NCBI GenBank assembly: GCA_000708835.1
Contig: DF237094.1
Location: 62,001 to 126,000, forward strand
Direction of reading: 5' to 3'
From: Klebsormidium nitens
Lineage: Eukaryota > Plantae > Klebsormidiophyceae
DNA: 64,000 nt
The notes below the pieces were generated by a model that worked only from the letters and a program-made list of their open reading frames with translations, was not told the DNA's origin and ran no database searches. This document shows positions 29,029 to 42,500 of this stretch, piece after piece. A program made the position numbers and the translations under genes. The stretch's first letter is position 1; every line of letters starts with the position of its first letter.

Positions 29029-32000
29029 TTACTGATACTGGGGAGCAAGCTCTCCTTCCCGCACAATATAATCTTCCTCAGGAAGAGGCTTTCCATCAAA
29101 CCAGCACTCGAGAATCTTCTTGGTCCCGGCAGCGTAGCGAGCCTGCATGCCAACAAAGCCGAATTGTTGCATAAAAGGGCTCGTCAAAAGCATTCCCTCG
29201 ATTCCCTCGACAAACAACGACGAAACATTATAGTACGCGCATCGTTGTGATTCAAAAGCAGGTTCGCAAGAAGGCCTCACAATGAGGGAATCCGGGGTAA
29301 CGTGATCGGAACTCGCATTGAATGCCAGCGAATATTACAACAGCCAACCAGCCCAGACTTTTGTCCAGATGACGCCTGTCGAGGCAAAGAGCCAAGTGAC
29401 CGGACACTGGCTAATGGCAGATGGACACATACTCTGTGAAAGAGAGCATTAAGTGAGCCAGGGCTTCGAAGACTGCCGGCTTTGTAAATGTTCAGAAGAA
29501 GCACATAAGCGGAGTGTCTCATGAGATGCCACGTGGCATCGCACACTGACCTGAGCATCGAGCGTAGTTCCCGACAGATGGGGGGTCATCGCGTGGTTAG
29601 GCATGTGGCGCCAAGGGTGGTCTGCAAACGAGACGGTAAGCTGTGAAAAGCGAATCAGGCGAAATTGACTGTCTCGTTGGAAAGAACAGATGCTTCTTTG
29701 GCCCAAGCGAGCGGATTGACAAGAACGGAAAACGTGCGTCAGAAGCATCATGGCCACTGTTGAACCGAGATTGCAGATAAACGGAAAGAGAGCCGTTCAT
29801 CGGACAGAAAGAGCAAGCAGAAGAAGCCTGGTGTATTTTGACTAGAAGATGACGGCCTTCCGGGGCCCCACGAAAATGGACAAACGAGTGAGACGTCCCC
29901 AGCACAAGCTCGATTGGGAATCAACCAGGCTTGCTGCAGAAGGAATACCTTGAAGTCGACAAAGAGTCGGCGTCCTTTTTAAACGCGAGGTGTTCCGAGT
30001 GCTCGCAGGAAGTCAAACAACGTCAAGTGTTTGAATCTGAGAGGGCGTCAGGGCTCTTGGCATGCTTGATAGTTTCGCCGGCAATTCCAAAAGCGGGCCT
30101 TTGAAAAAGAGGGAGGACGGCGCAATGTCTCTTTCTGAACATCCGACTAGAAAGGTGCAAACAGTATCGGTTCTAGGAGTTCAGTTGACCACCTAAACGG
30201 TACCTGAACGGTACGCACCTTTGGGCGGCGGCTGGGGATACCAGACGTCCCCACCGTAGCCGTTGAGCTGGCCGCTCTCGAGCGCCTCCACGATCGCCTC
30301 GCGGTTCACGATTTCTGCGCGCGCGTTATTGATCAGGTACGCGCCCTTCTTCATCTTGGCCAGCTGCTCCTTGCCGATCATGTGCCTGTGCGAGGAACTG
30401 ACCGCGATCAGACTCGGCTGATCTAATAGTAATTTCAAGTTTTGCAGGTCTCGGAGTTTTACGACTTGTATGCGTCTTTGCTTAGCCGCGAATGAGGGGT
30501 ACCGGAAACGCAGCACTCAGTTGCTAACCACATTCGAGAATTCAATTTGTTTCTGCAGTCCAGTTCTTGTCATGGCGGATAGAAGATCAGGTCGAGCGAT
30601 GACGTCAATTCTCTCCGGTACGCTTTCAGACCAGCAAAGAGATCGCCAATCGACGCGAGATCAGCCGCTCATTGGGACGTAGGAAGTTAAAGGGAAGACA
30701 CCAACTCAGCATCCAATATCGTTGTTCAATGACGCATGTTCAGAGCAGTTGCAACAGAGCGCGAAGAGGTTTGAGCTACATTGACATTCAATCCGCTGCA
30801 TCCGCTGCAATGCAGACCTTAAGAGTATCGGCCATAAGTGCGGGATTTTACAATTCCGGACGGGTAAAGCAGAAACGTCACTCCGGACCTAATGAGGCAG
30901 TCCACCGAGCACGCCAGGACTTCACCACTTCTGTTTCCGGATTGTTTGAACACTATTCCGGACACCCCGTGTCAACTGACCGACTGAATTGGTTAGGTCC
31001 GGAAAAAGGTTTTTGCTCTGCCCGTCCTAAATCGCGATTTCCGGAGTTAGGGCCGATACTCTTATAACCTTACCTGGTCTTGTCGGTGAGGGGCACGTTA
31101 ATTGACACGACGTCGCACTTGCTGAGGAAGGTGTCGAGGTCCTTCTCAAACGTAGCGCCGAACTTCTCGATGTTCTCGTTCTGGTGGCGCCCGTAGTACA
31201 GCAGGTTGCAGTTCCAGCTCTGCGGTTGAGAAGGCCAAAAAGGGCAGATAAAAAAAAAAATTCTTGATCTGCCCCGTGACTTGGTCAGCAAAGCAAATGT
31301 ATGAGAGACGGGGAAAGCTTTTTAATGGAATCGTACGAACGTGGTTAAAGACATCCGTTCTGTAGCGCGCACCGCACAGCTGGCCCCGGTTCAGAAGGAA
31401 GATATAATCTGCACAGTAATTTTTGCCCACTCGGAAGTCAAAGGAAGAGAAGCTCGAAGCAAATGGCAAGGGTTCAAAAGATGAAGCGAAGCTAGAGACC
31501 GATTCTTGCCCGACATGAACAAAACCGGCTCTCATGTTTTGATCCAAGACGCTCTTGCAAACTGTCAGTGGTTCCCTGTCTTTTCCCGTTCTTCCTCCAC
31601 CTTCGCAAATGCAAAGATTGCAGAAACGAACACTATCTCGCCTTCGCCAATTCGGGAACGCAAGATTCCGAACACGAAATCTCACCTGCAGGCGCTTCAT
31701 CATTTCCTGGCCGATCCTGCCGGCGCCCAGCGTGCCCACGGTCTTACGCTCCAGGTCGTACGCCTTGTAAGCGACCGCGGCCACGTTCCACTCGTCGTGG
31801 ATGATCTGGAAGCGAGCACGAAAAGTCAGGGCATTTAATGTCAGACCCTTACCAAATCAAAAGAGTCAATCCTCCAAATCGGGTCGAACGATCGGCATGG
31901 TGCTGTGAGCTAAGGATTGTCTGTAGCGGAGAGGTTTCAATGGCTGTCAAACTGCGCACAATCGTACAAGAAACATTTGCTTAGACCAGCGCATGAGCAT

Positions 32001-34708
32001 CCTTGACGACTGACCAGGTGCGAATTGATACGAGCAGGAACAGAGTGGCACAGCAAAATGATCGGTAAGCAACAGCAACAAAAGGTCAGGTCAGCACGGC
32101 AAATACGTCACTCGCCGCCTCGCACCTATCACGCCGAACTCACGCACTCGTCGAGCAGTAAAAGTTTGTAGAGGTGCCTTAGTGAAAACCTTCCGGAAAT
32201 TGCGGCCTCAAGATCTTCTCATCTCATCAGAAAGAAACTAGATTCTCTCAGCAGAGTACCAATGCTGCCAGTGGTCAGAAACTCAATCGGAAAGCGAAGA
32301 ACCTCGAGCAACAAAGCATGGGGTCAAATTCAGGATTTGGCCGACCGAAAGTCCAGTGACCTCGAAGTGAGGAGGCAAAGAAGTTGATTTCGAACGTATC
32401 TCAAGACGACAAGGTTTGTTCCCAAGAAGCAAGAAACCAGAACGATTCGCACTGCCCGAAATGTAAGAAAAACCGTGGAGCTTTACGAAGCCTGCAAAAT
32501 TTCAGTTTGAGAAAGCCAGCTTTTACGGCTCACCTGCATGTAGCCGGGGATGAAGTTGCGAATCAGGATCAGGATCCGCATGATCTCGTCCTCTGCCACA
32601 CTCGTGACGTTGCTCCCTGCACGGAAAGACGGCGGGATATGATTCGTCAACGGCGGTGTCGTGAGACTATCCAAGCGCAATGCGGATGTCCGTCGTTGAG
32701 CGAAAGAGCCGCACAAACTTTTATCACATAGAATCATCTGAGGTGGACCCGAAGATAATGGGTGGTCGCCGCAACAGATTGACACTTCGCATTCCTCAAG
32801 AGACTCCCCGAGAGCAAGGAGTCTTGTCACGGTGTACTGCTGCACTTCCCGGATTTGTCTAGTCTGATCACAATTTCGCCTGACGTCACCTCACCGGCAA
32901 TCTCGGCGACCGTCATGCCCTTTTCGGCTGCCGCGTGCAGGTCGATGTGGTCGCTGCCCACCCCCGCGGTGATGATGAGCTTCAGTTTTTTGGCCTTCTG
33001 GATCCGCTCCCTGGTCATGTATGCCGGGTGGAAGGGCGTCGTGATCAGGATGTCGATCGTGGGCAGCTGCTTCTCCAGCTCTGTGGAGACGACAAGATTC
33101 GGAATGTCGATGGCGTTGAGAACGAAATCGCATAGGAATCCATGAGACCGTTGACTTCTGCCAACTGCTACGATAGCAGAAAACTTTACGCGAGCATTAA
33201 GAGTTTGCGAGGGTTTCCATAAGGGAGTCCGTTCTCGGCAACGGCTTTTGCGCTTCGACCGAAAAAGAGTCCACTGAGAAACTCCGCCAGACAAGTGTCA
33301 CCTTCTGGCAGTGACGATGTACTGATCAGCAACTTAGAATTGTGAAGGTGACCAGTCAAAACCCGTTTATAAACGGTTGGATGCATGCCAATGAACTGGA
33401 GACTTCCCGAGTGGTCGTGGTAGAATCCCTTCATTCCACTTACCTAGGTTCCACGCTTGCAATCCGTTCGCCACCTGACAAAAATCATCTTGGCAAGAGC
33501 TTGAATATCGAGATACAACCGAGAGACCTTGCCCTACCCGACAATCAGGCCAACTAAGTGCATTGGTCTTCGAAGACGTACTTTGCATGAAAAATGATAT
33601 GGGCAGAACATGCAAGACGCTTATATTGTAGCGCCCCATCGAGCTTTCACGATCCTAGGAACAGCAGCAAGAGGGACTAACTGCCGCAGAGTGTGACAAT
33701 ATTCTCTGGGGTGTTTCGCTTGGTTTAAAAGGGGTCGCCGCACAGCAATGACAGCAACTACGAACTTTGGAACAGGTTTGGAAGCAGACGACGGCATGCA
33801 CAAGAAAGTTCATGCACAACTCCTCACCAGAATCGGGTCCATCCTTGTCGTCTGTCACAATGTACTCGTGTCCCAGTTTCTCCAGCCACTCTCTCAGCCC
33901 GAGTCCATTCTCAGCGCAGGCCAGGAACTGCTTGTTTTTGGCATACTCCCCAGCCTTGTATAGGACTGCCAAAATCTTTTGCTTTCCCTGCGCGGGTGAA
34001 GAGCGACAGGATTGTTTCGTATGCAAAGCGCACCTGATGGCGATCCAGGCCATTTCCGTAAACTTCATTCAACGATCTACATTGAGGTTGCTGAGTGCAG
34101 GTTGGATAAAAATCAAGGTGAGCTTTAGGTTATATTGCAGACAACCTTCCGGTTCCCTAAGCATGCACGCAAGGTCTTGATCTCAAGGCCTTCGTGAGAT
34201 TCGAGGTTTACAGAAAGCACACATTTCTGCACTACAAAAACGTCATTGTAATCAATTTGAACATTGAAACGAAGCAGTGGCACCGAATCTTACTGCATGT
34301 GATTTATTGAGCTCTTTCGCGCGTCCAGATCCACGTTCTGCTTACTTCATAAGAGGTCCGTTCTAAGAAGTGCACCAGCCATTTCCTTCAGTTCAAGTCA
34401 GACACCAAGGTATGCCGGAATTCATAGAATCACTCTGCATGAATGCAGAAGTGCCAGTGACCGTAATAAAGCTCTTCAAACAAAACCGGGACCTGCTTAT
34501 CTAAAAGACAAGTCTGTGACGAAGTCGCGACATAAGGCTGCATGAGCTCATCAATGCTGGTCAGAAGCTGCAGTGAATGTATAATCATTTTTACGGTCAA
34601 GAAGAGAAGTAAGATCGAGAAATGAATTAATGCATCTCAGTATTTCAAAAACGCCTCATAACATGATAGCTGCAAACAACTGACCTCGTGACGCTCGTTC
34701 CCTTCCAT
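29029..34708 (-). CDS. FDH: Formate dehydrogenase, plant-type D-2-hydroxyacid dehydrogenase family, copy A (9 exons)
   Basis: Exons read at GT/AG sites: 34708-34685, 33987-33828, 33080-32895, 32616-32534, 31805-31686, 31219-31074, 30385-30219, 29621-29551, 29142-29029. Motifs: [77 protein letters not shown]. Confidence 0.97.
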
Positions 34709-35561
34709 GTTCTTACTGTCGCTTTGTGCTCGCTGGACGGATTGAGCACTCCTCTTGCTTGTATTAGGGACTTCTGTTTGAAAAGCTTTCCGCTCTTCTA
34801 GCTGTCTGAGTTCCTTCGAGCTCTCTCGCAAATTTGAAGGTCATTCAATCTGAGCGTAGTGTCTTTCTGATCTCGCAACTTGGGGCCTTGAAGCGCTGCA
34901 ACACCGTTTGATCGACCTTTGAAAGCCGGCAGACAGCAGGTACCAGCTCAGCTGTGAGTCTTGCGCTCAGAAGACAATCTCGTGTGCTGGACAAGGTTCC
35001 TGCGACTTCGAGCGGCGAGAATGGAGAGGGGAAGTCATCTTGTAGCTCTACAAAGCTTTCACTCCAATCTGCGGCGCTCCTCTTTCCTGAAGCCCTTCGA
35101 ATTTTGCTGAGGTCAGCCGTTGCTCATGCAGCCCTGCATGGACGCCTGCCGCCTGAACTTTCGAATCAGAGGAAGCAGAGGGCCGAGACGACTTGCGAGT
35201 TGCATGCTAGTCTTACTTTTGGCGCCCGGCCTGAAAGGTTTTAAGGTTCTGATGTTCGCAATAGGGCTTGAGAACGGAGCACAGAACTAACTTGGCACGT
35301 AAGCGGTTTTCGCGGCTCCACGGGTGCGTGCATGAATTGTCCAACTCAGGAGAATTTGTCCGCATGCAACTGATTTCGAAGCCGCGGCCGCGTAGCGCAG
35401 GTTTGAGCGGTCGCGCCACCCCAATATCGACATCCGTCAGCGCATGCGCTTGCATAATCAACATGGGCAGCTGAAAACAATCATGATGTCTATGAGTCAG
35501 GAGAACCATAGTGCAACAATTATTTGGTGCCGCCGAAAAATCTACCGATTAATCAATTGGC

Positions 35562-35760
35562 ACTCCGATAACTTTCGTGTGACCTAAGAGCCGTGTGACC
35601 TAAGATAGGCACCCGGGGGACGGGTGGGGTTGGTATGGTGGTTAGGGTGGGTTGGGGTGCGGGGCGGGTGATTCTTTGGGTTAGGGTTTTCGTTTGAAGT
35701 GCCCGGGTAACTCGTACCTTAGGTCACACGCCCGTTAGGTCACACGAGAGTTACCGGTAT
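35562..35760. mobile_element. 199-bp MITE with ~45-bp imperfect TIRs and a 9-bp TSD (Mutator-like TSD length)
   Basis: Left end actCCGATAACTTTCGTGTGACCTAAGAGCCGTGTGACCTAAGAT. Reverse complement of the right end: ataCCGGTAACTCTCGTGTGACCTAACGGGCGTGTGACCTAAGGT. Direct repeat TCAATTGGC at 35553-35561 and 35761-35769. No coding capacity. Confidence 0.88.
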
Positions 35761-36019
35761 TCAATTGGCAGTTCCGACCGACGGTGATGGATTGAGCAAA
35801 AAACCAACAATTACAAAATATTACGCCCTCACAATATTACGCCCTCGTTATCTCTCTACTATTTGACGTAGAGACAGTGAGAGAGCGTCGGACCGCTTGT
35901 GCCAATTGTTTGTTCAAAAATTTGTCCTGCAACACTTGTTTGTTGTATTGCAACACTTTGTTGAGAACGCCGATTCCCAATTGTCCCTGCTATTTTACAC
36001 TCAATTGCCTTCACATAAA

Positions 36020-39000
36020 TTACTGGTACTGGGAAGCAAGCTCTCCTTCCCTCACAATGTAATCCTCTTCAGGAAGAGGCTTCCCATCAAACCAGCACTC
36101 AAGAATCTTCTTGGTGCCGTCAGCATAGCGAGCCTGGAGCACAAAAAAGTCAGGTTACTTCTAACAAAAACTCCTTACTAAGGAAGAAACGTGAAACTAA
36201 GTTCGCGCGTCCTTGTTATACAGAAGCACTACACCTTTCTACGAAGGCCTTAACTGACATCCAAACGTGTTACAAATTCATCGGATTCCCGCAACAAAAA
36301 TGGAAGGCAAACAGCTCAGTAGTCCGTCAGAACGATGCCTGCTGAAGCAACAAACCTGAATCGAGACTATTCAAGTCTCAGCTAGATATAATCTTTCCAA
36401 TAGGAGCAAGTGAGCCATGGCATCGAAGAATGCCGGCTTTATAAAATGTACAAAAGACAGAAATACAAGGAGTGTCTCGTAAGGTGCCACGTGGCAATAT
36501 TCACTGACCTGAGCATCGAGCGTGGTTCCCGACAGATGGGGAGTCATGGCGTGGTTCGGCATGTGGCGCCAAGGGTGGTCTGCAGAAGCAACGATAAGCC
36601 GTCAGAAACGAAGGACGCAACAGTGTCTTCCTCCTCGGAAAGAGGAATAGAAGCTTCTTCGGACCAAGGCTTTTTCGGACCAAGAATTCTTCGGATTGAG
36701 GCTTCTTCGGACCGAGGCTTCTTCGGACAGAGGCTTCTTCGGACCAAGCGAGCAGATCCAGAGAAACTTTCGAACGTGCGTCAGAATACATCATGGCCAC
36801 TCTGTAACCGGGATTGCAGGCGTCCGCAACGGAATGAGGTTGATCAGCCATACAATCTAGAAAATCAGCGAGGGACGCTTAATGTGTTCAACCAGTCACA
36901 GTTGACGGTCTCCCCAAGTCCCAGAGAAAATGACACGCGGGATAGAGTATCCCCCGACAAGCACATTCTGGTCGATCACCAACCGGAACTATTCTGACTC
37001 GCCGGAACAAACTCGTTTGCACGCTTCAGCCCAGACTAACCGTAAAGTAAAGAATCAAGAGTCGACGCGACGTTGAAGCCGGAAGTACTCTTTATAAGCG
37101 GGATGTTTGTACTCGTAAGCACTTCAAGATTCAAGCAACCTCAAACAACCTTCCCGGGGTACGGACGGCACAGTTTCTGCCTAACCCGCCAGCGAACTCT
37201 CGTGCAAACCTTATAATTTCTCATACAAACCTTAGTGAAGAACGAGCGACGCGTCCCTTCAGACTTTCTGTTTGGACGCTGCACAAAGCAGCAATTATGA
37301 GTTTCTTGACAAGCCAATTACCGGTACGTACCTTTCCCCGGCGGCTGGGGGTACCAGACGTCCCCGCCGTAGCCATTGAGCTGGCCGCTCTCGAGCGCCT
37401 CGCCAATCGCCTCGCGGACCACGATGTCGCCGCGCGCGTTGTTTACCAAGTACGCGCCCTTCTTCATCTTGGACAGCTGCTCCTTGCCGATCATACCTCT
37501 GCACACGGGAAATGATGACGTCAGTGAGCCAAAAATCGTCAACCGGTACTGTGTTCGGGACAACTCTGCGTCATTTTCGGCACTCCTTCGCACCATAAAA
37601 CGAGACGCTACACGATTACGGAGGAAATCTCGACGCCCAACTAGGGTACATCGCCTGTCATGTTCCCCATTCTGTGATCCTAAACCCATTCCCCTGACCT
37701 TGTTCTGCTTCACTTCGTCACCTCGAATCAGCTACTCCTCGCACAATACCCCTTTCACGCCCCGACGTTTGATATTTTGTGAGAGGGCCCCAAGACAAGG
37801 TCCGCGTTTTTCTCATTAAATGATGCCAAGGTGTAAGGAAGCTTTGCACAACCGACGGAAGATTCCTTTGAACCCCAAAGACCATTGAGATTTTCCGGCA
37901 TTTTGTACTTTTTGTATCTTAATGATCTGTCAGTAGGACGTCAAATCCGGTCAACATGTGTGATTGACAAAAATCACGATGCAACGACCCGCATCAGTTT
38001 CGAAATCAAACGCGACTCATGTCTCCATTTTAGAATACCGTCGCGCTAGGAAAGGTTATAGTCTGTACCTGGTCTTGTCGGTGAGAGGCACGTTGATCGA
38101 TACAACGTCGCACTTGCTGAGGAAGGTGTCAAGGTCCTTCTCCCACACAGCCCCAAACTTCTCAATCTTCTCGTTCTGGTGGCGCGCGTAGTAAAGCAGA
38201 TTCAGGTCCCAGTTCTGCGGACGAACAGAGTGAGTCAGACACCAGAAAGAAGGATTGACCACTTACAAGACCAATGATAATCCTAAAGGAAGGAGGTAAA
38301 ATTTGAAGATACTCGTATTGGCTACGAAACGACCAATCAATGCACATCGAGTGGAGGGGCGTAACTTAGCAGGGACAGATTACGTGGTCGCAAAGCTCGA
38401 CCATTTCAATCAAATGGACCGTTTCATTCATTGCTCTTCCTCATCCTTCGCTCATTAAACGCTATCAATCTTAGTCGCGGAAAGAAAGGATATTAAGCTC
38501 ACCTGCAAGCGCTTCATCATTTCCTGGCCGATGCTACCGGCGCCCAGCGTACCCACGGTCTTGTGCTCCAGGTCGTACGCCTTGTGAGCAACAGCGGCGA
38601 CGTTCCAGTCGTCGTGAATGACCTGTAGTAAAGAGCGCGGTCTTCTGAGTTTTCATAGTTCGTACGACGCTTCTGTTGTGTCTACCCCGCTACGTCTTCT
38701 TTGCGGCTTTCGACACACAGAAATCTGAAGGATAATTGAAGCAACCGATTGCGCAGACAAGGACCCAGAACTTCTGGGTTTGGCAAAGAGTCCGGCTTCT
38801 GTTCGTAGAAAAGCAGCAAACAACGTTCTAAAAATGCAGACGTCCAATCAGTGAGAACACAGATCATTTGCAGGAAAGTTGATACAATCATGAGAGATTT
38901 TGGAAGCGTCATCTAAGGTTCACAAGTACAGAAGATGAACAAAACAGTCTCAAACGGAGTCGTCGTCCAATCAAAAGAAGAATCGGCCTTTGAAAGAATG

Positions 39001-41871
39001 CCCCAAGCAATCAGGAGACCTCTCCCCGAGAATGGAAGGGCAACAGCGCCATGGCAGAGTTTAGATCAACGAGAAGTCCAAATGACACGGAGATGGTTTG
39101 GACTCACCTGCTGGTATCCAGGAATGAAGTTGCGAATCAGGATCAGGATTCTCATAATCTCATCCTCTGCTACGCTGGTCACGTTGCTCTCTGCGCGGAG
39201 AAATACGGGCACATATGAACACAGAAAAACGTCGAAAAAACGCGTCGTTTAATATTCTCTAGTGCTCAATTCACATGCGTCGACATTGAGCTTGCTTCGT
39301 CATTCTGTTGGTTCAGCCGGTTTTGTCCGCTGTAGCAGCTTTGTCATTACCGGGTACATATCGACACCGCCTTCGATATGCAGACCTAAGCGCCTCGGAC
39401 ACTGACCGAAACCAGAGAATAGAAATAACAGCAGTCAAAATTTCAAGTATGCGGGATTTCGGTGTATTTGAGGAGAGGAAGATAAGAACAGAGGCTTGTA
39501 CCCACTTGAAACCTCAACGGGTTTTCTCACGGAAGCTCAAAAAATCGTTCGAGAAGGCTCAATGAAACAAGAATGCACGATCGCGAGAAGACGACAGCAA
39601 GAGGGCCAGTCACGACTAGAACGGCAAAAACTTTGATTTACGCTTCCGACGCTTCGATCGCGAAGAAACAGAATAAGGTACTTACTGGCAATCTCAGTGA
39701 CGGTCATGCCTGCTTCGGCTGCCGCGTGCAGGTCAATGTGATCGCTGCCCACGCCGGCAGTGATGATGAGCTTCAGATTCTTGGCCTTCTGGATCCGCTC
39801 CTTGGACATGTACGCCGGGTGGAACGGCGTCGTGATCAGAATGTCGATCGTTGGCAGCTGCTTCTCCAACTCTGTCAATGCGACAAGGGTCGATGATGAG
39901 AAATGTTACCGCAAGAACATAATTGTCAAGGCCTCTACACATGTCAATCCTCAGCAGCTGGTTTAGTGGCCCTGGGACTTCTGAAAGATAAAAGAGATAA
40001 AAGCCTGCCGCCCAAGATCGCATCTGGGGTACTACAACGCGGAGTGTCCGCCATGCATTGGCAGCTTTTTATGCAGCTCCACACAAGCGTCAGGACTCTA
40101 CGAATCAGGGAGAACGTGGTTGGACCTGGTTTGGACAATGCTTTGTTGCGATTCAAGCGACAGCCTCCACCCCCCCCTCTCCTCTCAGTCAACGTCGCTG
40201 ACGTCCGAACTTTCGGGAACGTGAGGAAAGTTCAAAGTTTGGGCGGTTGGGGCGATCATACCACGCCCCAAAACAACACGTTAAGAATGTGCATCACACG
40301 TTTAAAAAGCAAGTCGAGTCGCCGCCGACATATGCAAATGATCACCAGACCACCACCATAGCAATTTCACGCAAAACTCTTTCGTCTTCTGGGTCAAGAC
40401 TCTGTTTCAAGATTCAAATCGTAGACTCAGCCCCTGGCTTACACAACAGTTGATTGAAACTAGTGTGAAACTAGTGGACAATTCCAGTTATCGGGTTTTT
40501 CCATCAAGATTGAAAGACACATGCAAGAAACCTTTTGATGCCCCCAGACGTCCATCCTTTCTTGCTACAACAGTTGCTGTCATAAACTAAAACCCAGCCA
40601 GCAACGCGGCTTTTTGTCACGAAGGATGTTTCCTATTTGTGAACAACTCTGAAAAGCTGTCACGAAGGATGTTTTCTATGTGTGAATAGCACGGAAGTGG
40701 CAGAAACAGATGCATGTTTCAGCGAAAGGCCTCACCAGAGTCTGGTCCCTCCTTATCATCTGTCACAATGAACTCATGTCCTTGTTCCTTAAGCCATTCC
40801 TTCACCCCAAGGCCGTTCTCAGCGCAGGCCAGAAACTTCTTGTTATCAGCGTACTCCCCAGCCTTGTACAGGACTGCCAGGATCTTGTGCTTTCCCTGTT
40901 CACAAGAGGGCAAACGAATTCAGCTCGTATGCAAAGCGCAGCGGATGACGATCCAAAGGTCAATTTATTCCGACTACGTTCGAAAATTCTGGGAAGAGAC
41001 TGTTTTCGACTCTTCAGTGGGTATGACCAGATAAGTCATGAATTCTGCTGGAACGGGAGTATCACATATGTTGTAACGTCGTTGGCGAATCTCAAGATTC
41101 GGAGTGAAATTTGAGAACGTGGACCTCAGCTGTCAGTTATACTTTCAAAGCAGACTAGCAATTAGGACAGCTCTTACATGACCTACTACTAACTGTGATA
41201 ATCGGATGTACAAATGACTAACATTTGTCTCTGCATGTGATCAAACGTTGCAATAGTCCTACGTCCAGGTCGATCCCCAGCTTCTTCTGTACAAGTCCGT
41301 TTCTGAGTAGGTGGCGGAGCCTTGTTGATCACTTCAGTTCAGCTTCCTCAATGATGTGCATGAGGCTGCATGAGCTCACCAAGACAAAGGCTCGTTGCAG
41401 AATCCTTATCTGTTGTGATTCAGAGAATGTGAGCGCAACTTCACAAAGATATATGTACCAATCTGGTGAAGTGGACTGGGTATTGTACTATCAAAGCTGC
41501 ATATTGCTCACCTCATGACGCTCTTTCCCGCCCATTCTGTCACTGTCGTTTTGAGCTCGCGGAACGATTGCAACTCTTTTTCTGCTGACAGACCCTGTGC
41601 CCGAAGTTGCTCTGCCTCCTTCTAAACGGCTGAATACCTCCGAGGTCTCTCGCAAACCTGAAGGTCGTCGGAGTTGAGCCGACTGTCTTTGCGATTCCGC
41701 AACTCGGGGCCTTGCAACGCTGCAACACTTTGTTCGACCAGTATTTGAAAGCCGGCAGACAGGTGATGTAAGCTCAGCTGAATCTTTTGTGCTCGAAGGG
41801 AATCTCGAGCTGCTTCTGTGATGGACGAAGTTCCTGAAACTCTGAGCGGCGAGAACGGAGATGGAAGTCAT
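36020..41871 (-). CDS. FDH: Formate dehydrogenase copy B (9 exons) with a long N-terminal transit-peptide-like extension
   Basis: Exons: 41871-41512, 40895-40736, 39871-39686, 39190-39108, 38622-38503, 38214-38069, 37498-37332, 36579-36509, 36133-36020. Same intron positions and catalytic motifs as copy A (NNARG, YPQP, TPHLSG). Exon 1 reads [24 protein letters not shown]...MGGKERHE and ends at a GTGAG donor in phase with exon 2. Confidence 0.96.
36651..36746. repeat. Intronic minisatellite, 6 x 16 bp (AGGCTTCTTCGGACCA consensus)
   Basis: Six adjacent near-identical units. The equivalent intron of FDH copy A has a single unit at ~29690-29705. Confidence 0.9.
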
Positions 41872-42500
41872 CTTGTCGAGCTACAGTCTGGACTCTGCAT
41901 CTCTCCCTCGACTGCTTGACGCCCTTGCTTCGACCTTTTGCTGAAGTCAGCCGTGGCTCATGCAGCCCTGCGCTAAAAGCGAACGCCCGCCGCCTGAAGC
42001 TTCGAATCAGAGGAAGCAATGCCGAGACGACTGCGGATTGCATGCGGAATGCTTTCGGCGCCCGGCCCGACCCTCCCTCAATTCATACAAGGGTTCCGAT
42101 CCTTGCCAGAGGTCTTGGGAATTATCCAAAAAACAAGATTTGCACCTCAAGCGCTTTTCACGGCTGCCTCGGGAACGAAAAGTGCATGCATGCGATTGTC
42201 TGACTAGACTCTCAAAGAGTGGCCACATGCAACTGTTTGCGAATCCGCGGCCGCGTACCGCAGGCGTAAGCGGCCGCCCGCGACGGACGGTACCGGCGCA
42301 AGCGTAGGCGGCCGCGTGCGCCGCCCCGCGAGCGCGCGTCCTCGGAGTCGATCAGAATGGGCAACTGGAAACTAGAATGGTGCCCATGAAAGATGAAGTT
42401 TCTGGTTGGACTCTAGAAAGTCTGCTGGAAAGTTCATGTCTGTTACAAAGCAAATTGAATTCGAAACCTGACTGGCTTTGGTGGCGCATGAAGGCGCTGT
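41872..42500. promoter_or_regulatory. Putative bidirectional promoter between FDH-B and HCF107
   Basis: 630 bp between divergent ATGs, with a GC-rich core holding three GCGGCCGC motifs (42247, 42270, 42308). A homologous copy lies at ~35100-35480, upstream of FDH-A. Confidence 0.5.

Follow-up and report, generated by a model that had tools for sequence, protein, structure and literature searches.

The 64,000-nucleotide stretch of Klebsormidium nitens DNA analysed here (contig DF237094.1 of NCBI assembly GCA_000708835.1, positions 62,001 to 126,000; hereafter the window, to which all coordinates refer unless stated otherwise) carries on its minus strand, at positions 29029-41871, a tandem pair of formate dehydrogenase (FDH) genes with nine exons each. 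They are designated copy B (kfl00145_0170) and copy A. Exon 1 of both copies contains two ATG codons of importance, an outer one (ATG1) and an inner one (ATG2), separated by a stretch referred to below as the leader. The parts of the two genes are the following.

41536..41871, minus strand: leader-specific coding part of copy B, with ATG1 at 41871-41869 and 112 codons until ATG2; absent from the public annotation.
41512..41535, minus strand: copy B from ATG2 (41535-41533), the annotated start of kfl00145_0170, through the end of exon 1 (MGGKERHE).
36020..40895, minus strand: exons 2-9 of the copy B gene model (40895-40736, 39871-39686, 39190-39108, 38622-38503, 38214-38069, 37498-37332, 36579-36509 and 36133-36020).
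34709..35038, minus strand: decayed leader of copy A; ATG1 is kept at 35038, and the frame is disrupted by indels and stops.
34685..34708, minus strand: copy A from its predicted functional start, ATG 34708 (MEGNERHE), through the end of exon 1; the NCBI product of 356 amino acids (aa) spans exactly this start.
29029..33987, minus strand: exons 2-9 of copy A (33987-33828, 33080-32895, 32616-32534, 31805-31686, 31219-31074, 30385-30219, 29621-29551 and 29142-29029), intact.

The copy B model read from ATG2 is identical to P0008, the NCBI entry "formate dehydrogenase [Klebsormidium nitens]" of 356 aa. This protein matches Pfam families PF00389 (2-Hacid_dh, E 1.7e-17) and PF02826 (2-Hacid_dh_C, E 2.6e-51), and its matches among FDH structures are 7ARZ (E 3e-153), the Arabidopsis entries 3NAQ and 3JTM/3N7U (~E 2e-147) and the Candida and Pseudomonas enzymes (E 1e-116 to 1e-103). 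The motifs NARG, PQP and TPH(L/I)SGT, which we take to be the catalytic ones (by eye, following the Pseudomonas numbering), are present in both translated models. The cofactor site is unusual. NAD+-specific FDHs owe their preference for NAD+ over NADP+ to an Asp that ends the second Rossmann strand (Y-x-D-R); it is replaced by Ala in copy B (LLYYARH) and by Gly in copy A (LLYYGRH). In the aligned FDH set 113 sequences carry the Asp, and nine, both copies included, carry Ala or Gly. Apart from the missing Asp, both enzymes are ordinary members of the plant-type FDH family. Two further changes, in or near the nucleotide-binding fingerprint, are specific to copy B: it reads GAGSIG (38540-38525) where copy A and most aligned FDHs read GAGRIG, and it has a Lys at the 39686/39190 junction where copy A has the usual Gly of EIA[G]SNV.

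The two copies differ in exon 1. The initial annotation had described exon 1 of copy B as an open frame of 120 codons ending in MGGKERHE, and translation bears this out: positions 41871-41512 of the minus strand (the last exon position being 41512 rather than 41511) hold 120 stop-free codons followed by a GT donor, and exons 1 and 2 meet in phase 0. The leader frame cannot begin earlier than ATG1, as it is closed by a TAG four codons further upstream. When the leader was shuffled, the frame stayed open in 0.4% of trials. The early part of the leader is, as had been noticed, Ser/Arg-rich with few acidic residues: among the first 30 residues there are 8 Ser and 2 Thr, 3 Arg (4 Arg+Lys) and one acidic residue, and the leaders of the related contigs L001 and L003 (see below) are similar. 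Many acidic residues are found in the second half.

The homologous stretch of copy A (35038-34685) carries a +1 insertion right after ATGACTT, followed by gaps of 8, 2, 1 and 4 nucleotides (nt) relative to copy B. Translation from ATG1 would end at a TGA after 23 codons, and a second TGA, at 34843-34841, stands opposite a CGA of copy B. The insertion and the latter stop, placed earlier at about 34840, had been noted, and the further frame-shifting indels add to them. The inner ATG at 34708 (MEGNERHE) is retained, as also noted, together with the GT donor.

Comparison of the two copies with each other is uninformative on whether the leader codes for protein. The A and B leader stretches are 70% identical, like the upstream DNA, their differences are evenly spread over codon positions (31/37/30), and the decayed leader of copy A has a flat GC content by codon position (52/51/50). 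Evidence comes from other algae. A profile of the single exon 2 led to four short open reading frame (ORF) products, the contigs of which were examined as L001-L004: L001 and L002 belong to Logan run SRR23617307 (a second alga), L003 and L004 to JGI samples 3300060284 and 3300060285 (a more distant relative, the outgroup). L005 (JGI Ga0315919_1004473, 1912 nt), from the outgroup alga as well, has the look of a fully spliced mRNA; it is assumed to be RNA-derived and would be a retrocopy if the sample is DNA. L003, L004 and L005 represent the single-copy outgroup gene. L001 is the orthologue of copy B (exon 2 identity 91% to B, 76% to A), while L002 contains the 3' end of a B-like gene and then the orthologue of copy A (95% to A, 77% to B).

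The copy B leader finds its counterparts by tblastn in L001 (8693-9022, 52% identity over 121 residues, E 2e-17) and in L003 (9132-9305, 40%). In both contigs the leader begins with an ATG whose conserved context is the same, and it stays open for 110 codons in L001 (8693-9022) and for 105 codons in L003 (9132-9446), up to a GT donor that joins exon 2 in frame. All three lineages begin the leader with MTS[IL]S.LA[AT]QS[FL]R[NR]FVHH and have VPR[AV]Q..M[GA]G close to its end. All indels between these open leaders are in frame: two between copy B and L001, of 12 and 18 nt, and one of 3 nt between L003 and L005. The A lineage is different in this respect, as copy A and its L002 orthologue are separated by 15 gap runs, mostly not multiples of three. 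The ratio of nonsynonymous to synonymous substitution rates (dN/dS) between the copy B and L001 leaders is 0.47, or 0.30 outside the first 40 codons, with 28/24/42 differences by codon position; between L003 and L005 it is 0.50. The latter two contigs are 95.2% identical over the leader, 92% over the 5' untranslated region (UTR) and 86.8% over the stretch after the leader. Upon simulated random substitution of the copy B leader the frame remained open in 2.6% of trials at 28.8% divergence and in 0.9% at 45% divergence. Given an open frame in each of three lineages, indels that preserve it, dN/dS of 0.3-0.5 and a low chance of staying open, the copy B leader is best read as translated sequence under moderate constraint. 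Constraint of this degree is typical of import peptides.

The first ~120 nt after ATG1 (41752-41871 in copy B, 34920-35038 in copy A, 8693-8812 in L001 and 2388-2500 in L002) are conserved even at synonymous sites, with a proportion of synonymous differences (pS) of 0.10 as compared to 0.51 in exon 2. Within them all six sequences, among them the A copies with their broken frame, contain AAGATGACTT without any change. RNAalifold applied to positions -20..+80 around ATG1 gave -4.4 kcal/mol with no covariation and no credible structure.

The history of the pair can be read from the same contigs. The tree of the catalytic cores pairs copy A with copy B (support 97-98) and places the L005 protein outside them as outgroup (98). 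At the outgroup locus there is a single FDH gene with the same upstream TPR/HAT neighbour as in K. nitens, and no second FDH was found in ~5 kb downstream of it. In the second alga L002 shows the tandem order B then A. Because orthologues of both A and B are present there, the tandem pair is, on these alignments, older than the split of K. nitens and the SRR23617307 alga. The outgroup gene carries both the leader and the inner ATG; as it has the leader, the ancestor is reconstructed as leader-bearing and copy A as having lost it. The comparisons with L001 and L003-L005 thus support the view that the leader of copy B is genuine, conserved and older than the duplication.

The copy A orthologue in L002 is also broken, with a stop after 32 codons, and its lesions differ from those of K. 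nitens copy A. No frame-breaking lesion unambiguously shared by the two was found in their alignment: the leader may have been lost twice, in parallel, or once, the loss having been begun by a change not visible in the alignment, for example a shift of the transcription start.

The decay did not extend to the enzyme. The cores of A and B are 88.5% identical with dN/dS of 0.12 at a synonymous divergence (dS) of 0.54, and their four-fold degenerate sites are 72% identical. Over exon 2 dN/dS is 0.04 in the B lineage and 0.01 in the A lineage (copy A versus its L002 orthologue, dS 0.78). All nine exons and the splice sites of copy A are intact, and its GC content at third codon positions (GC3) is 81%. 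Both catalytic cores are thus under purifying selection, and copy A, with its intact exons, its GC3 and the exon 2 dN/dS of 0.01 against its orthologue, should not be regarded as a pseudogene. The proposal that copy A is leaderless is in line with these data: its leader decayed and a selected 356-aa enzyme was kept.

The second in-frame start raises the question of a short product of copy B. ATG1 stands in ACAAGATGA (A at -3, A at +4) and ATG2 in ACAGAATGG (A at -3, G at +4); ATG2 has been conserved in all copies, and its context is the optimal one. Between the two there is not a single ATG in any frame over 285-330 nt in copy B, L001 and L003/L005, where ~4.5 would be expected (P about 0.006 per lineage, the lineages not being independent). 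Two conserved in-frame starts with no ATG between them are what one usually sees in messages with two sites of initiation. It is therefore plausible that copy B also makes a short form from the ATG at 41535, as had been suggested. Upstream ATGs lie at -215, -172, -90 and -29 relative to ATG1 of copy B and, if the transcription start is unchanged, at 35038 and +194 in copy A.

Land-plant FDH is a mitochondrial enzyme. The copy B leader immediately precedes the mature domain, in the same frame, and this position, together with the N-terminal composition and the fact that plant FDHs are made with N-terminal import peptides (PMC3347622), makes an organelle import signal its most likely role.

As for the organelle, the leader was compared with those of the other FDHs in the set. 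With ~112 residues it is about three times as long as the mean of Asp-type FDHs (37); its Ser+Thr content is 32-40% versus 24%, and early basic residues number 1-2 versus 2.6. Long leaders occur also on other FDHs lacking the Asp: Ceratodon P0009 (91 residues), P0011 (77), Spirogloea P0013 (85) and P0052 (93), of which P0011 (a 1.8-kb Logan contig) and P0052 (a Trinity ORF) both come from transcript-derived sources, while P0010 is N-terminally incomplete and stands outside the leader-length comparison. Bryophyte Asp-type FDHs have presequence-like leaders of 52-70 residues. Across the set, all N-terminally complete green-lineage Asp-less (YYAR) FDHs have leaders of 77-123 residues and the Asp-type ones much shorter leaders; in the FastTree phylogeny the Asp-less FDHs form a basal grade and not one clade. 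Towards their C-terminal ends the long leaders can be aligned on a single invariant Pro, after which comes x-[A/C/V/G]. The mitochondrial peptidase expects Arg at -2 or -3, and in sequences outside Klebsormidium this pattern comes without such an Arg.

Considering indirect signs, namely the length, the Ser+Thr content, the few early basic residues and the long leaders of other Asp-less streptophyte FDHs, the plastid is, as had been proposed initially, somewhat favoured over the mitochondrion as the destination of copy B: among the import scenarios the plastid alone is given not quite an even chance, the mitochondrion alone is possible with a lower probability, and import into both would be the least probable of the three. 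Two observations speak against the plastid. The conserved PRA/Q would fit an Arg at -2, and no second, Asp-type FDH of K. nitens is among the 120 FDH hits listed; if the alga has none, copy B could be its sole organellar FDH and hence mitochondrial. No relevant report of a plastid or NADP-type FDH in mosses or algae was found in the literature searched. A wider scenario is tentative and, in our estimate, has clearly less than an even chance: streptophyte algae and bryophytes might keep an old Asp-less FDH line with plastid transit peptides of 77-123 residues, a chloroplast NADP(H)-linked formate/CO2 enzyme lost in vascular plants, and the Klebsormidium duplicate that shed its transit peptide would have moved this chemistry to the cytosol.

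Taken together, the data are probably best explained by an ancestral leader, a tandem duplication and a subsequent division between an organelle-imported copy B and a leaderless, cytosolic copy A. According to this explanation the ancestral FDH of Klebsormidiophyceae would have had a leader of ~105-120 residues and a conserved second in-frame ATG before the catalytic domain, and it would have been duplicated in tandem before the split of K. nitens and the SRR23617307 alga. Copy B would have kept the leader, translation from ATG1 in K. nitens giving a 468-aa precursor whose extension serves as the organelle import signal. In copy A the decay of the leader would leave only the 356-aa leaderless enzyme, presumably in the cytosol. 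Leaky scanning or a downstream transcription start could provide the short form of copy B from ATG2. If so, the split between A and B would be asymmetric and not clean. The original idea that the tandem duplicates split their targeting thus stands as far as the leader of copy B is coding, ancestral and lost in A, and would have to be relaxed as to a clean partition if copy B also makes the short form.

A number of observations weigh against this explanation. The public annotation (NCBI GCA_000708835.1, DF237094.1) places the start of both genes at ATG2, giving 356-aa products. The leader has no GC3 enrichment (46-55% versus 69-81% in the core, the introns having 47%), which may mean that little of the long form is translated. 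The fairly good context of ATG1 (A at -3) disfavours much leaky scanning. The acidic second half and the total length are unusual for a simple transit peptide. When a profile of the three leaders was run against 1.84 billion representative proteins, the only hits were two tandem-repeat proteins, taken as spurious, and Pfam gave no match on the leaders; a word search with the 120-aa leader as query (candidates of 66-210 aa) likewise found no match.

The outgroup contig L005 bears on the explanation in both directions. In its favour, L005 begins at least 112 nt upstream of ATG1 and has no earlier ATG, therefore ATG1 is on the outgroup mRNA as its first AUG. Against it, the contig uses a distal donor (9583/9584 in L003 coordinates), 137 nt beyond the proximal one, and thereby retains part of "intron 1" (region L005 425-563, L003 9447-9583). 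In this isoform the leader ORF ends at a TGA, out of frame with FDH, and the FDH frame restarts at a new ATG (MHEGARG...), which yields P0007, the 358-aa product called by JGI. The proximal donor of L003 (9446/9447) would give an in-frame fusion of leader and FDH. It may be added that use of the distal 5' splice site, CATGA[A/G]/GT, creates the new in-frame start MHE/G, and that exon 1 of K. nitens likewise ends in CATGAG/GT. In fungi, alternative splicing is known to include or leave out the signal peptide of FDH (PMC3347622), so that the ancestor may, by analogy, already have made both forms.

These observations lend some weight to the view that there is no real split, copy B being mainly a 356-aa cytosolic enzyme (made from ATG2 or from starts inside exon 1), the long form being minor and the copies differing mostly in regulation. 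Besides the annotated start and the missing GC3 bias, such a view accommodates the conserved ATG2 with its optimal context and no preceding ATG since ATG1, as well as the outgroup mRNA, which gives only a leaderless FDH (P0007). We consider it unlikely, as three lineages have preserved the leader frame, with indels in multiples of three and dN/dS under 1, which means that the long product is made often enough for selection to act. Moreover, the leader of copy A decayed freely after duplication, which suggests that leader and short form have separable functions.

Less likely still is a translated leader that acts not in import but as a regulatory upstream ORF (uORF) or as an N-terminal extension controlling the translation or stability of FDH. 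The leader ORF of L005, a separate frame of 110 codons that stops out of frame with FDH, would suit this role, and so would the first 120 nt, which are conserved at synonymous sites and still similar in the broken A copies, and the ATG1 that both A copies keep as the start of a short uORF. In copy B and L001, however, no stop intervenes between leader and enzyme and the exons are matched in phase, so that initiation at ATG1 must give a fusion, as would also be the case in frame with the proximal donor of L003. The N-terminal composition fits import signals, and the related plant FDHs all bear N-terminal import peptides (PMC3347622).

The remaining two alternatives are both very improbable. If the annotation were right and the stretch were 5' UTR in both copies, its openness in copy B being due to chance, then the even spread of the A-B differences, an identity level like that of the upstream DNA and the lack of GC3 bias would be understandable, but the even spread is expected anyway if copy A decayed, and this view is largely refuted by the three open diverged lineages, the in-frame indels, the third-position excess, the dN/dS and the simulation (0.9-2.6%) given above. 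That copy A is dying or silent and a single FDH is at work could be argued from the upstream ATGs that would lie in its 5' leader, yet it does not agree with nine intact exons, intact splice sites, the high GC3 and the low dN/dS, both against B and, despite the large dS, against the L002 orthologue.

Organelle import of copy B and a cytosolic copy A thus remain the preferred explanation. The conserved 112-codon N-terminal extension predicted on kfl00145_0170 is unannotated and newly recognised, and its addition corrects the public model of a K. nitens stress-marker gene. This gene was reported as a marker of heat, salt and polyethylene glycol (PEG) stress, its up-regulation being shown for salt and PEG (PMC9643330). 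The quantitative PCR primers of that study match copy B exactly, and the reported 112-bp product spans the modelled exon 6/7 junction; copy A has one mismatch to each primer. Owing to this exact match, copy B is identified as an expressed, stress-induced gene.

Two further features of the locus precede the genes.

41872..42277, minus strand: upstream region of copy B (promoter / 5' UTR), aligning with that of copy A in blocks of 63-77% identity.
35039..35414, minus strand: upstream region of copy A, homologous to that of copy B.

The introns of the two copies are, unlike these regions, largely not alignable. Conserved blocks upstream of both copies, L001 and L002 (41925-42200 and 35100-35380, minus strand) include GCATGCATGCAC, CGCATGCAA.C.GCA.GTCGTCTC, TTCGAA..TTCAGGCGGC and GGGCTGCATGAGC.ACGGCTGAC.TCAGCAA, the last of which contains a 4-codon ATG...TGA mini-ORF in copy B, copy A and L001. 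A gene for a 960-aa TPR/HAT (Syf1/CRNKL1-like) protein starts at ~42534 on the plus strand, divergent from copy B, and the same neighbour stands beside FDH in L001 and L003. As its coding start is only ~660 nt from ATG1 of copy B, the two genes probably share a bidirectional promoter. The spacer between B and A harbors a 193-bp element (35565-35757) resembling a miniature inverted-repeat transposable element, with 43-nt terminal inverted repeats (86% complementary) and a C-rich core similar to telomere repeats. The introns flanking exon 8 (36408-36819 and 29451-29776) differ from the others in being alignable between A and B, and in copy B this intron sequence includes a tandem repeat of 16 nt at 36653-36748, present six times (plus-strand unit GCTTCTTCGGACCAAG).

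The locus offers a clean, outgroup-polarised example of a duplicate gene shedding its address tag. The leader and the missing NAD-selecting Asp hint at a place of action for a possibly NADP-linked FDH in early-diverging streptophytes, which is of interest for formate and CO2 metabolism and for finding natural NADP-FDHs. FDH paralogues and isoforms with different or absent leaders are already known in soybean, Arabidopsis and fungi. New are the predicted conserved leader on kfl00145_0170, the polarised history from a single gene through a tandem pair to decay in A, and the apparent link between absence of the Asp and a long leader across streptophyte algae and mosses. The surprise value is moderate, since paralogues and isoforms with and without targeting peptides are well known, FDH included.

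The closest known system is the mitochondrial NAD+-dependent FDH of land plants (potato and Arabidopsis; 3N7U/3JTM, 3NAQ, 7ARZ), which belongs to the same family and fold (E 1e-147 to 1e-153) and is likewise encoded by a stress-induced nuclear gene with an N-terminal extension before the K-I-x-x-V-x-Y start (PMC9643330; PMC3347622). The Klebsormidium leader differs from it in length (~112 residues versus 23 in potato) and shows no sequence similarity to the land-plant leaders; Ala (B) or Gly (A) stands in place of the NAD-selecting Asp, and the destination in Klebsormidium is a predicted one. Arabidopsis FDH has a dual mitochondrial and chloroplast location, and soybean FDH isoenzymes have different long leaders (PMC3347622). 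The likeness consists in one enzyme that reaches (in Klebsormidium, by prediction) several compartments, and in paralogues that differ chiefly in the N-terminal peptide. In contrast to these plants, one Klebsormidium paralogue is without any leader, by decay, and the ancestral state is readable from the outgroup.

The fungal FDH resembles the outgroup alga, where an alternative 5' splice site in L005 removes the leader from the FDH frame. The difference is that only one isoform was observed in the outgroup alga, and that in K. nitens the contrast appears fixed in two genes instead of arising by splicing. In more general terms, it is a textbook case of subfunctionalization when one of two duplicated genes loses its N-terminal targeting peptide. 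The FDH pair is similar to this model in that the leader of one copy degenerated, both cores are under selection and the ancestor is reconstructed with both features. It departs from the model in that copy B may supply both forms, which would make the partitioning asymmetric, and the compartments themselves are assigned from sequence.

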